Source of the DNA: Octopus sinensis
Lineage: Eukaryota
Direction of reading: 5' to 3'
Assembly: GCF_006345805.1 (NCBI RefSeq)
Contig: NC_043014.1
Span: forward strand, 1,984,001 to 2,048,000
DNA length: 64,000 nt
Shown: piece by piece, positions 24,601-62,894 of the stretch
Position numbering within the stretch: the first letter of the stretch is position 1
Layout: every line of letters starts with the position of its first letter
The notes under the pieces: generated by a model
Told to the model about the DNA's origin: nothing
The model's database searches: none
The model's input: the letters and a program-made list of their open reading frames with translations, nothing else
Translations under genes and position numbers: made by a program

Positions 24601-27600
24601 AAACTAATTGTTAAAACCCCTATTTCTTACTTTCCAGCATTTCACTAGATTCAGGTTCGCACCATTTATCACTATAACCAAATCCTAGCTTTCTACATAA
24701 CTTCCACTCGATTATTCTCCCTGGCTTCTCATGTTTAGTCTTGTATTTTCTTCTTGAAAATTGCTTTATAGTATTTGTTGCCCCTTTTACTTCTGAATCC
24801 AGGTCCCACCGAGGTTAAATCTGCTTTTCATCCTTTCAGGGCCAATAAAATGAAGCAACAAATAATCCCGGGGTTGATTTAATCGGCTAATCCTAGAAAA
24901 TATAACTTTGTGCATAAATCAGAAAATTATTAATAATATGATAAAATTCTTATTTCTAATAATTATTATAATTGCAATTAGCGTTCGAATTGTGACAATT
25001 GTATCATAATTGTAAATCCTTATATTTAATTAAAGCATAATTTCAGAAATTATCCAAGAGTACCTTGAGAAAATACAGTAATCCCTGACCATATCGCGGT
25101 TCACCTATCGCGGTTCACCTATCGTGATTCAACTATCGCGGTTTATTGCTTAAGCTTACGTCGTTTCCTCTGCGGTGTTGTTTTCAGTTTATAATAAACT
25201 GATGCTACAAAGCTATTTCCTATGATTTCAAATATAAGAAAATTCAGATACATTTGTAGAAATATTTGGTTGTGAGAAAAGTCATTCTGTATTAAAGTCT
25301 GATTTTTCTAAGATGGCAAGCTGGCAGAATTGTTAGCACACTGGGCGAAATCCATCGTGGTATTTCATCAGTCTGCGTTCTGAGTTCAAATTCCGCCGAG
25401 GTCGACTTTGCCTTTCATCCTTTCGGGGTCGATAAATTTAGTACCTATTTTTTTATTACCCACAAGGGGCTAAACATAGAGGGGACAAACAAAGACAAAC
25501 ATAGGTATTATGTCGATTACATCGACCCCAGTGCGTAACTGGTACTTAATTTATCGACCCCGAAAGGATGAAAGGCAAAGTCGACCTCGGCGGAATTTGA
25601 ACTCACAACGTAACGGCAGACGAAGTACCGCAAAGCATTTCGTCCGGTGTGCTAACGCTTCTTCTAGCGTTAATTTAGTACCAGTTGCGTACCGGGGTCG
25701 ATCTAATCAACTGGCCCTCTCCCTTCAAAATATCGGCTCTTTTGCCGAGAGTAGAAAAGAATGTCTTAATTGTTTTGTGTATCTCTGTTCACACATGTCT
25801 CACATCAACCAAATAAAATTACTAGATGACATTACTAACAAAAATAATAACAACTAATACATCGACTATAGACGTTTAGCTTCATCAAATTTTGTTCCGC
25901 CCGTTTCTATTCTCACTCATTTCCTTCCCGACATCCTTTTTGTCCCTTTAACTTTGTATCATCTCGTTTTTTCTCACCATTTTTCTCACTCCCTTTCATT
26001 TTTATTACAGTTAGTCTTTCCGAGTTAATGTATTTGCCACCTCTCTGTGTCTGGTCGTTTGGTATGACTCAGAAGAAGTCCGCCATTTTGATGTCGCTTC
26101 ACGGATTATTCACAACAATCGGTGAACTCTTCCTTGGCGTGTTTGTTGATCTGCTTCACTTTCGTAGCAAGAACTTGTACATCTTCTCTCTGATAATATC
26201 CTCTGTATCAATCATATTGATGCCATACTGTTATACCTTCCAGTACATCGCTCCTGTAGTCTGTATCTACAGTATTGCTCTCGGTAAGTTTATAACATTT
26301 TCAACGCAATTCATTTTAGAATTTTATTGTAATGTTCGTATATTCACCATCGTCATCATCTCCCGACTGGCGCAACCCGTCTCTGTTGTGCTACTCTGAA
26401 CGATCTAGCAGTTAGCACTCATCACTGATTCTCTGTACTCCAACACACGCAGAAGGGCCGCAGTTTTGGGACTTGTTAAATCGTTGATACTAGGGCCAGT
26501 CGATTAGATTAACCCCAGTACGCAACTGGTATTTAATTTATCGACTCCGAAAGGATAAAAGGCAAAGTCGACCTCGGCCGTGAAATTCTCCATATTAATG
26601 TTGAGAAAAGTAAAACACTGGAGCAGAATGCTTCGTAAATATAAATATGTCATAAAAATGGGTTTCGATATTTTGCAGGACAAAAAAAAAAAAAAAAGTA
26701 AAAATTATACGATATACAAAAAGAAAGCAAAAAAAAAAGGAATAATTTTGATAACAGTTGACTAAAACCCCTCGACATGTGCCGATGTAAAATTCCATCA
26801 AATATTGGTCTGAAGTCAGATGTATTTCAGTATTCTGCTATTTTACAATATTTTATCTTTGTCTTAACAAGTTAGTCCATCACCAAGCATTTCAAATAGA
26901 ACACAATTTTACACAAATGCGTTCTTGAATTATATACACAGGTTTGGAGGGTAGAAGTTCCTTTCAGTTATTATCAAAAATCACACAAATATGTTTGTGT
27001 ATTTGTCTATATATGTGTGTGTTTGTGTGTGGCATTCTGAAGCTGTATCGTTCTCCATTTACTCCAGGGTTTACCGTATCACTAAGACTGGTGTTAACCA
27101 CTGAAGTCGTTGGTCTAGAACATTCTACAAAGGCATACAGTGTTCTATGTGTCACGAGTGGAATCGCAGGATTAGTTTCCTCTCCTCTTTTTGGTAAGCT
27201 CGTCAAAGTTATTCTTCAATATATTTATGAAATGTAATATTGAAAATAGCCGATGCAATGTGCTTCTCTATGTTGTTTGTTTGTGTTAGTATTGAAAACC
27301 GTTTCCCCAAAGAGAAAATGTACACTTATATAGTTTATAGTTCCATTGTCACTTAACGTCAAGTCTAGCGTAGGAAAAAGCTTTCTAGCATCAATAGATA
27401 AACACTTCCCTACAAACCACAGATACTGAAAACTATTCAAGCGACGTAGCGTTTACAGCTCAACCAGGAATATGAAAAGAACATCATAACAAGAGTTAGA
27501 CGAACAATATCGAATCCCCAGGCAGCTGCACAAACCAGGGTTTATGCTCCTCTAAGTATGTCCCGCGATACACAAGCGGTTGTGTACAAAGATGAGGTTA

Positions 27601-28732
27601 GCTTCTATAGACGTACATCTAACAGTAACTAAAGCCTGTATATAGGCAAGACAAAAGGCAAGTCCAAGAGACAATATAACCACACTGCTACGCTCAGAAA
27701 ATAGGGAAAAGAAGGAAGAACGTCAAGAAACTATCAAGTCACATCTGGAAATTAAAGAAATCAGCGGCAAAGAATTCGATATAATGTGGAAAGAATTCGG
27801 ATCTTTTAAAAATGGGACAAAACAATGCGACTTCTACAGCTAAGAAGGGCTTCAACTACTGGAATACATACACTTCCTAAATATACTTAATAAAAGATCT
27901 GAATATTAAAGCAAATGTAAGCAGTTAAAAAAATATTTAATAACACAATATTGAAAAATACAACTGCTACTGTCATTAGCTGCAACGCATCAAAGACAAG
28001 AATATGTGATGCAATGTAGCACAGAAATTCTCGGAGACAGCTAAACAACAACATTTTACTCCCATAAAATTCTAGTTTCACTTCTGTTATTTCATCGAGA
28101 AAATACGGTTTCGAGTCACAGAAGCAGTTTTCTACTTTCTTCTACCCAAGAACTTTTCCAGCCAAATATTCTGCCTGCTGCTACGATCTCTCGAAGTCTC
28201 TAAATACCTATAATGTAAACATTTTATAATTTTCACGAGAACATAGATTCTAAAATGAATGGAATATTCGAAGGGTTGCTTTGATATGATGGTTAGAACA
28301 TCAATCATGCTTACAGAAGGTGTGGGTTCGTGTCCGAAGGACAGCCTTCGACATTCTTTTCCATCCAAAGGGTTCTTAAACCCAATATGCTTCACGCCAT
28401 TATATATAGCTTTATCTACTTCAAGTTCCCCGTTAAAAACAATTGACTTTAATATTTCCAAGTTTTAATGATGAAAACGTACAATATTGTCCTTCAAATA
28501 ATACCCCATGCGTGTATTGATTAAATCGATATTTGGAAGTTTTCATGCTGCAAACAATACAATGTCTTCAGGAACTGTGATTCTTTAAACAATCTAATTT
28601 GTCATTTTAGGTCTGTTTTATGACATCACCGGATCGTTCCTGGTTGTGTTCTACGGAGCTGGAGCCTGTGCCGTTCTTGCACTAGTGTTTATTTCGTTAA
28701 TAACTTTACGTAATAAATTTTGTATAAAATAA
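15607..28732 (+). CDS. Gene A: SLC16 / monocarboxylate-transporter family MFS transporter, 8 coding exons, 489 aa
   Basis: Exons 15607-15856, 16287-16430, 19299-19571, 21330-21445, 22340-22505, 26011-26283, 27068-27193, 28611-28732. All introns are GT-AG with compatible phases; total 1470 nt, open to TAA. SLC16 hallmarks: PPDGGWGW before TM1, [25 protein letters not shown]-terminal FYDITGSF. Exon 4 (loop) is the least certain, supported by phase fit and by the paralogous exon in gene B. Confidence 0.92.
16850..17085. repeat. (CA)n / (CACG)n microsatellite
   Basis: Seen directly; one of dozens of di-, tri- and tetranucleotide tracts in the window. Confidence 0.95.
17290..17530 (+). mobile_element. 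RTE-like LINE fragment (gene A intron 2)
   Basis: Peptide [18 protein letters not shown] resembles the RLRWAGHVARM motif after the RTE RT domain. Confidence 0.45.
22515..23908. repeat. Two long (TAA)n arrays with TGA variants, split by the R4/Dong fragment
   Basis: Arrays at about 22515-22882 and 23456-23908. Confidence 0.95.
22883..23455 (+). mobile_element. R4/Dong-clade non-LTR retrotransposon 3' fragment (restriction-like endonuclease) in (TAA)n
   Basis: [13 protein letters not shown]...[51 protein letters not shown]...[18 protein letters not shown]. Flanked on both sides by (TAA)n. Confidence 0.8.
23909..24420. mobile_element. Non-coding interspersed repeat between (TAA)n arrays
   Basis: About 510 bp bounded by TAA repeats. 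Its start (CTGATTGGAAGTGTTATC) recurs near 24585. Family not identified. Confidence 0.4.
25074..25150 (+). mobile_element. Probable pogo/Tigger-type MITE end with a 13-bp tandem repeat
   Basis: TACAGTAATCCCT followed by about four copies of CTATCGCGGTTCA. No partner TIR located. Confidence 0.35.
25311..25765. mobile_element. SINE family C with a second family C copy nested in the opposite orientation (gene A intron 5)
   Basis: Host (+) 25311-25445 resumes at 25672. The insert (-) 25446-25671 is flanked by TSD AATTTAGTACC (25435-25445 and 25672-25682). Confidence 0.8.
27480..27900 (+). mobile_element. Degenerate Penelope-like GIY-YIG endonuclease remnant (gene A intron 7)
   Basis: Frameshifted VVYK...LYIGKT...HIWKLK...FDIMWK...NGTKQCD pattern, typical of PLE GIY-YIG domains. 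Many stops. Confidence 0.5.
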
Positions 28733-62300: not shown

Positions 62301-62894
62301 GTAGACAGACAGACAGATAGAGGGGGATATATAGAGTGAGAGAGACAGAGACAGACAGACTCTTACACAGAGGGGGAGAGACAGATATAGAAATAAGGAG
62401 TGATAGGCTGAGTGCAGTATCACAATGTTTGCTACAGTAAAGCATCAAATAAGTCAGCGTCGAATCAGTGATGCCTAAACGGCTGCGCCAAAGCGACTGC
62501 GCCAAAGCGACTGCGCCAAAACGGTTGCACCAGAACGTCTGCGCCAGAACAGCTGTGCTAAGACGTTTCATACCTGTGAATGTAATCCATATATAAACTA
62601 TAACTGATTGCAAAAACTTACCACTCGCGAATCCAAAGACGGAAACCACAGGAGCCATGTATTCGAATCTATTGCAGTGTGGTATCAATATTGCAGTGAT
62701 TACATGTATCGACAAGGAAAAAACATATATTTTGTTGCTACTAAAGTGAAGGAAATCGACAAATACTCCGAGTAACAGTTCACCGATTGTCGCAAACATC
62801 CCCAGAAACAACATCAAAAGTGCAGCATTTTGTTTACTCATTCCAAACGACCAGACACACATAGGTGGTATGAAGGCATACATTGCGGCAGTAG
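59394..62894 (-). CDS. Gene C (partial, 3' end): third SLC16-family paralog, exons 6-8
   Basis: Exons 62894-62622 (273 nt, FIPPMCVWSFGM...GELLLGVFVD), 61575-61450 (126 nt, [16 protein letters not shown]) and 59527-59394 (GLVFDATKSF...RLQK*). GT-AG junctions with the same phases as A and B. No exon-5 equivalent found in 62895-64000. Confidence 0.88.
59999..61257 (-). mobile_element. Full-length mariner transposon with a disrupted transposase, in intron 7 of gene C
   Basis: 30-bp TIRs at 59999-60028 and 61228-61257 (29/30 identical, TCAGGTTGGTGCAAAAG...). TA on the left, TG on the right. Split ORFs 61100-60447 and 60437-60087 contain WAPHKL, TGEEKW (first catalytic D is E), HDNARP and YSPDLAPSDY. 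Confidence 0.93.

Follow-up and report, generated by a model that had tools for sequence, protein, structure and literature searches.

In the SLC16 family of monocarboxylate transporters (MCTs), an arginine of transmembrane helix 8 (TM8) has been treated as the defining substrate-binding residue (PMC6573034; bioRxiv 10.1101/2024.10.17.618737). H+/lactate symport by MCT1 and MCT2 (SLC16A1 and SLC16A7; human, rat) involves K38 in TM1 and D309 and R313 in TM8, in human MCT1 numbering, and the aspartate (MCT2 D293) is strictly conserved in proton-linked MCTs (PMC7228944). The substrate site of MCT2 consists of R297 in TM8, Y34 in TM1 and F351 and S355 in TM10, and the carboxylate bonds R297 and S355 (PMC7228944). 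In the bacterial SfMCT, an N276/R280 pair positions the carboxylate-binding arginine, and lactate binding is abolished when the arginine equivalent to that of TM8 is lost (PMC6573034). MCT1 carrying R306E or D302R failed to reach the plasma membrane, and the R306K and swapped D302R/R306E mutants were found at the plasma membrane but were inactive (PMC2409183). MCT8 and MCT10 (SLC16A2 and SLC16A10), facilitators of thyroid hormone and aromatic amino acids, have neither the TM8 aspartate nor K38, and in MCT8 a charged TM8-TM10 interaction, the salt bridge of Arg445 with Asp498 together with TM7 Tyr413, organises the C-domain. Here we describe three SLC16 paralogues, genes A, B and C, in a stretch of 64,000 nucleotides (the window) of Octopus sinensis contig NC_043014.1, positions 1,984,001 to 2,048,000. 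In all three the TM8 arginine is replaced by glutamate, and an apparently older arginine is present in TM10.

The window is AT-rich, microsatellite-laden eukaryotic DNA. The genes were reconstructed from exon-level tblastn matches and inspection of splice sites.

15607-28732, plus strand: gene A, 8 exons (15607-15856, 16287-16430, 19299-19571, 21330-21445, 22340-22505, 26011-26283, 27068-27193, 28611-28732, stop codon included), 489 amino acids
33524-47329, minus strand: gene B, 8 exons (47329-47080, 45502-45359, 43335-43063, 40898-40810, 39138-38970, 37508-37236, 36024-35899, 33684-33524, stop codon included), 494 amino acids
59394-62894, minus strand: gene C, last three exons, TM7b to the C-terminus (62894-62622, 61575-61450, 59527-59394)

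All introns of A and B are GT-AG and the reading frames are intact. The three genes are already annotated in Octopus sinensis. The product of gene A is 100% identical over 489 amino acids to P0001 ("monocarboxylate transporter 9-like isoform X2"), the model of gene B reads the same as P0007 ("MCT9-like"), and that of gene C the same as P0004, a 507-residue "MCT12-like" protein whose 5' exons lie beyond the end of the window. The MCT9, MCT12 and MCT14 names on these genes are the product of automated similarity naming.

The proteins are members of SLC16. The first family signature, [D/E]G[G/S][W/F][G/A]W leading into TM1, is present as DGGWGW at residues 26-31 in both A and B, and D26, G27, G28, G30 and W31 were nearly invariant in an alignment of 105 sequences. 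The second, YFxK[R/K][R/L]xLAx[G/A]xAxAG leading into TM5, is found at residues 149-166 of A and as YFDKKRATAIGITNCGGG in B, the end of the motif being slightly degenerate. Pfam MFS_1 was matched with E=1.7e-31 by gene A and E=2.4e-40 by gene B. An AlphaFold2 model of A built from the 105-sequence alignment had 12 helices (pLDDT 86.3, pTM 0.83) and a disordered TM6-TM7 loop at residues 205-285, in keeping with the long-loop, 12-helix architecture of SLC16. The top 24 Foldseek matches of the model were MCT1, MCT2, MCT8, MCT10 and SfMCT, the best being inward-open states (MCT1 7da5, TM-score 0.93; MCT10 9hhq, 0.91; normalised to target). The nearest characterised relatives, MCT1, MCT2, MCT8 and MCT10, share only about 20% identity with the octopus proteins.

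The residues at the TM8 substrate site were read by direct translation, which reproduced the motifs and coordinates of the initial annotation; the spliced models gave the same residue numbers (E355, R414 and S49 in A; E347, R406 and N49 in B).

26124-26126, plus strand: A E355, TM8, position of MCT1 R313, GAA codon
26112-26114, plus strand: A T351, TM8, position of MCT1 D309 (Asn in the sister group), four codons before E355
37393-37395, minus strand: B E347, TM8, GAA codon, in the peptide AIVGELSFGVFMD
62779-62781, minus strand: C glutamate of TM8, GAA codon, in the peptide ATIGELLLGVFVD

When gene A was compared with all PDB chains by phmmer, MCT2 (3e-29), MCT1 (1e-25), MCT10 (1.6e-25) and MCT8 (1.7e-17) were matched, and the alignments to the MCT1, MCT2 and MCT10 chains were free of gaps across TM8 and TM10. 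E355 falls opposite rat MCT1 R306 (human R313) and the arginine of MCT10 'GVGRLLFG'; T351 falls opposite rat MCT1 D302 (human D309), where B and C have alanine; and S49, which is N49 in B, falls opposite K38. The TM8 register was the same in an alignment of about 200 relatives made with a hidden Markov model (HMM), in which the near-invariant G348, G359 and D363 served as anchors. The placement of Glu at the R313 position, Thr or Ala at D309 and Ser or Asn at K38, previously proposed from a hand alignment, was thus confirmed. None of the MCT1-4 type markers (TM1 Lys, TM8 Asp and TM8 Arg in A and B; the TM8 residues also in C) is retained, and the MCT1 mutants R306E, R306K and D302R/R306E gave no active transporter. 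Together with the SfMCT mutagenesis, these replacements place A, B and C outside the canonical H+/lactate symporters of the MCT1-4 type, in agreement with the initial annotation. Two further residues attracted attention. E321 of TM7 ('SLSELMY') occurs in A only, and the TM8 histidine noted earlier (H347, 'LHG') is indeed present in A and B, but it is absent from C and is Leu in the O. bimaculoides orthologue of A. Neither E321 nor H347 is likely to be core to the mechanism.

The TM10 arginine is likewise encoded in all three genes.

27085-27087, plus strand: A R414, AGA codon
36005-36007, minus strand: B R406, CGA codon
61556-61558, minus strand: C arginine of TM10, AGA codon

In the phmmer alignments, R414 stands opposite L367 of rat MCT1, L358 of MCT2 and a methionine of MCT10. 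The residue seven positions earlier, L407, is opposite rat MCT1 F360, MCT2 F351 and the Asp of MCT10 'FDG', which is the position of MCT8 D498; here B has Ile and C has Ser. The TM8 Arg-TM10 Asp pair of MCT8 and MCT10 is therefore absent: glutamate occupies the Arg position, a Leu, Ile or Ser occupies the Asp position, and the arginine lies seven residues further down.

The relatives of these genes were collected from 5.8 billion clustered proteins, with exhaustive HMMER over 1.84 billion cluster representatives. A word-based search with residues 300-489 of A as the only query matched Octopus proteins alone; the Sepia and Argonauta members were recovered by exhaustive HMMER. Both sites were then tabulated in 202 aligned domains from the nearest relatives.

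TM8 Arg, TM10 Arg: 47 of 202 domains
TM8 Arg, TM10 Thr: 36 of 202 domains
TM8 Glu, TM10 Arg: 13 of 202 domains
TM8 Gln, TM10 Arg: 10 of 202 domains
TM8 Gln, TM10 Thr: 8 of 202 domains
TM8 Glu, TM10 Thr: 5 of 202 domains (an insect orthogroup)

Besides Arg, Glu and Gln, the TM8 site was also occupied by Met, Val, Lys and Asn. The TM10 arginine had been called unusual. However, Arg/Arg is the commonest pair among these relatives, and many SLC16s of arthropods and molluscs that retain the TM8 arginine have the TM10 motif 'SLRS/T'. A follow-up search of the insect orthogroup, which includes Neocloeon XP_059471974, an Anopheles AGAP001782-like protein and the Tribolium 'MCT12', found TM8 'N-x-x-G-E' in all 118 members, from mayflies to mosquitoes. 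These proteins share the glutamate at the TM8 Arg position, but keep Asn at position 351 and always have Thr, rather than Arg, at the TM10 site. The combination of Glu with Thr in insects indicates that the TM8 glutamate is neither unique to cephalopods nor coupled to the TM10 arginine.

Phylogenetic trees were calculated by FastTree (175 domains) and by IQ-TREE with LG+C20 (45 domains), and the two agreed. In the IQ-TREE tree, A, B and C fall within an eight-member Octopus tandem cluster (support 100/100), which is nested in a 15-member cephalopod clade (support 100/99). The other named members of the clade are an Octopus 'MCT14-like' protein and proteins of Argonauta hians and Sepia pharaonis; it also holds transcripts from two SRA runs assigned to Sepia esculenta by published papers. 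The successive sisters are a transcript (P0055, Gln/Arg), the Octopus 'MCT9' P0074 (Arg/Arg), bivalves (Arg/Arg) and gastropod and arthropod Arg/Arg proteins. The sites were compared between the sister group and 13 sequences of the clade.

Position 351: Asn in 20 of 20 sisters; Thr, Ala, Phe, Cys, Leu or Trp in the clade
Position 355: Arg in 20 of 20 sisters; Glu in 7, Gln in 3, Asn in 2 and Lys in 1 of the clade
Position 414: Arg in 20 of 20 sisters; Arg in 13 of 13 of the clade

The subfamily that we define on this basis is monophyletic, never has Arg at position 355 and always has the TM10 arginine. With members in Octopus, Argonauta hians, Sepia pharaonis and, as transcripts, Sepia esculenta, the trees place A, B and C in a fast-evolving SLC16 branch observed only in coleoid cephalopods. 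The lineage-specific subfamily suggested earlier was borne out in this respect, but the glutamate is not its fixed trait, for the residue varies among Glu, Gln, Asn and Lys.

The tandem arrangement of A, B and C indicates that their shared Glu and Arg were inherited from a single ancestor and do not represent three events. By the tree, the TM10 arginine goes back to the ancestor of a large SLC16 clade of arthropods and molluscs, and it stands there beside the TM8 arginine (all 20 sisters). The nearest outgroups are mollusc and arthropod 'MCT9/12/14-like' proteins, for example O. bimaculoides MCT9 (XP_014784377), Ostrea edulis XP_056012158, Mytilus SLC16A14 and Lottia XP_009047165, which have TM8 N-x3-R, TM10 'SLR' and, as in A, B and C, a motif-A-like G-x3-D after TM8. 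A histidine after this motif (D-x2-H) is also found in some outgroups (Mytilus, Ostrea, Ylistrum). No known substrate was found for these proteins. They retain the TM8 Asn and Arg, a pair like N276/R280 of SfMCT, whereas the cephalopod clade has lost both. This Asn-x3-Arg pair was probably dismantled once, on the cephalopod stem, with Arg to Gln as the first step. In the most economical history, Gln then changed to Glu, which requires one nucleotide change, on two occasions, once in the Octopus cluster and once in a lineage of Sepia, and Asn and Lys came later. The insect glutamate, which lies in a different clade, has an independent origin. Both TM8 positions have lost their constraint in the cephalopod branch, while the TM10 arginine stayed invariant.

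The geometry of the two sites was deduced from the helix boundaries of the AlphaFold2 model and from homology to MCT2 and MCT8. In the model of A, TM8 (residues 337-363) and TM10 (residues 393-422) both run from outside to inside, and E355 and R414, each eight residues from the cytoplasmic end of its helix, are at equal depth. They are the only deeply buried Asp, Glu, Lys or Arg residues in the TM8-TM12 helices. R414 comes three residues after the position of MCT2 S355 and seven after that of MCT2 F351, a spacing (i, i+4, i+7) that puts it on the same face, one turn towards the cytoplasm. R414 is thus predicted to face the cavity from TM10, at one turn's distance below the serine that co-binds the carboxylate. 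The salt bridge of MCT8 indicates that TM8 and TM10 touch at this level, and a contact between E355 and R414 is plausible. In the Arg/Arg relatives, two guanidinium groups would make the site strongly cationic.

On this evidence we lean, by a modest degree, to the reading that A, B and C still function as 12-helix facilitators in which the anionic group of the substrate would be held by the TM10 arginine, R414 in A. The TM8 residue would no longer bind a carboxylate; its role would be to tune gating or specificity. The glutamate of A, B and C probably either forms a pair with R414 or serves as the binding site of a proton or cationic group. The intact reading frames, the confident AlphaFold2 model and the TM10 arginine invariant in 13 of 13 sequences support a working facilitator. 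Furthermore, comparison of the last three exons of C with those of its O. bimaculoides orthologue (locus L001) gave dS 0.19, dN 0.079 and a dN/dS of 0.40, which indicates purifying selection, although a somewhat relaxed one by the standard of transporters. In the Sepia esculenta RNA-seq runs, a Glu/Arg member was represented by full-length transcripts. Several points weigh on the other side. No transcripts of A, B and C themselves were found in the collections searched, each gene being represented on a single genomic contig. A partial loss of function is possible, given a dN/dS on the high side for a transporter and the variability of both TM8 sites. Moreover, the role given to the TM10 arginine is extrapolated from docking and mutagenesis of MCT2 by homology.

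The initial annotation had viewed the TM8 Glu and TM10 Arg as a compensatory charge swap, a pair mirroring Arg445-Asp498 of MCT8 and serving cationic or zwitterionic solutes. The glutamate does occupy the Arg position, the two residues lie equally deep in adjacent helices of the model, and MCT8 provides a precedent for a TM8-TM10 salt bridge. However, the arginine is seven residues past the D498 position, and it appears to be older than the loss of the TM8 arginine, with which it coexists in 47 of the 202 domains and in all 20 sisters. Members of the clade pair the same arginine with Gln, Asn or Lys, and covariation was not seen: the two sites changed together in none of about seven independent contrasts, a number at which the power is low. 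A charge swap is therefore considered unlikely.

It is also improbable that A, B and C have kept H+-coupled monocarboxylate symport by means of a redistributed acid/arginine dyad, with E355 in the role of D309 and R414 in that of R313. K38 (Ser or Asn at position 49) and the position of its network partner Tyr34 are not conserved, the loss of activity when D302 and R306 of MCT1 were exchanged points to an exacting geometry (PMC2409183), and the Asn or Gln of the sister paralogues cannot be protonated in this way. These objections stand against the presence of one buried acid and one buried arginine at the same depth on cavity-lining helices, and against the fact that the adjoining TM10 position binds the carboxylate in MCT2.

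A third possibility is that the genes are redundant, recent tandem copies under relaxed constraint that are losing transport or have a non-transport role. The dN/dS of 0.40 can be taken in either direction, as it is high for a transporter and yet clearly below 1. The variability of both TM8 substrate positions, the long branches of the clade (stem lengths 0.76-0.91) and the wide expansion of SLC16 genes by tandem duplication already reported in molluscs (PMC11939762) would fit such decay. But all exons are intact, the splice sites of A and B are canonical, the model is confident, and the MFS glycines, D363 and the TM10 arginine are invariant across octopods and cuttlefish, which makes relaxed constraint quite unlikely as the explanation. 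Least probable, and by our estimate very unlikely, is a subfamily re-tooled for a zwitterionic cephalopod metabolite such as octopine or related guanidino or amino-acid derivatives, in which the TM10 arginine would bind the carboxylate and the TM8 glutamate the guanidinium or amine, and the Glu, Gln, Asn and Lys paralogues would differ in substrate; octopine, the condensate of arginine and pyruvate, takes the place of lactate as end product of anaerobic metabolism in the mantle of cephalopods (PMC5445181).

No literature on this binding-site change was found. The facilitators proposed here are a lineage-specific variant of a known family and illustrate the shift of a binding site from one helix to another. 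Whole invertebrate lineages, the coleoids with Glu, Gln, Asn or Lys and a pan-insect orthogroup with Glu, have dispensed with the TM8 arginine, and the second, older arginine of TM10, widespread in invertebrate SLC16s, suggests how a site may move within the MFS cavity. A practical consequence is that these genes should not be annotated by name as lactate, carnitine or creatine transporters.

The exon lengths are kept between the copies (250/144/273/.../273/126), and an additional short exon in the loop (116 nt in A, 89 nt in B) restores the frame before the exon at 22340-22505 of A. A direct join of exon 3 to that exon was rejected because it broke the frame in both A and B. An acceptor at 27043 for the TM10 exon of A was rejected for the same reason, and comparison with B and C gave 27068. 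At E<=1e-3, a tblastn search of the window with nine family proteins revealed no paralogue exons besides those of A, B and C. An isolated fragment resembling a TM10 exon was observed downstream of gene A.

30837-30896, plus strand: fragment 'GFVVSLRSVLPSEIVGREQT', 2.1 kb downstream of gene A, with an AG in front and a stop two codons further on

The match was weak (E=0.001) and came only from a search with a short query. The 'SLRS' of the fragment is closer to the Arg/Arg relatives than to the local paralogues, and the fragment may be the decayed remains of an exon from a lost paralogue. Outside the window, P0002 and P0003 of O. bimaculoides and O. sinensis have a partial paralogue (TM8 'TIGQLCIG', with Gln) fused upstream of a full-length copy. 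The fusion is probably an annotation artefact, and it hints at another paralogue, partial or decayed, in some other part of the cluster.

Several other elements of the window resemble mobile DNA.

60087-61100, minus strand: Mos1/mariner-type transposase remnant in intron 7 of gene C, two open reading frames (ORFs), HTH_48 E=1.2e-15 and a weak Transposase_1 match
38049-38528, plus strand: ORF in an intron of gene B with 'YGRYIDNCIG', resembling a reverse-transcriptase motif
10050-10731, minus strand: ORF with '...GSAPCHTSR...', resembling a Tc1/mariner DDE region

Intron 7 of gene C is 1922 nt long here and 91 nt in O. bimaculoides (L001 21774-21864), indicating that the mariner element was either inserted after the two species diverged or lost in O. 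bimaculoides. The ORFs at 38049-38528 and 10050-10373 had no Pfam match at E<=0.01, and none was found for 60087-60437; the ORFs at 38049-38528 and 10050-10731 look derived from transposable elements. No tRNA genes were detected in the window by ARAGORN. A dispersed repeat of about 190-220 bp was present in 11 copies with 77-98% identity, on both strands, in introns and intergenic DNA. CA/TA microsatellites are often found at the edges of the copies, and the repeat looks like a short interspersed element (SINE).

Copies of the dispersed repeat: 29950-30200, 1196-1367, 1795-1977, 36233-36421, 43454-43640, 44334-44467, 46382-46573, 50840-51017, 54700-54918, 55276-55453 and 63448-63608

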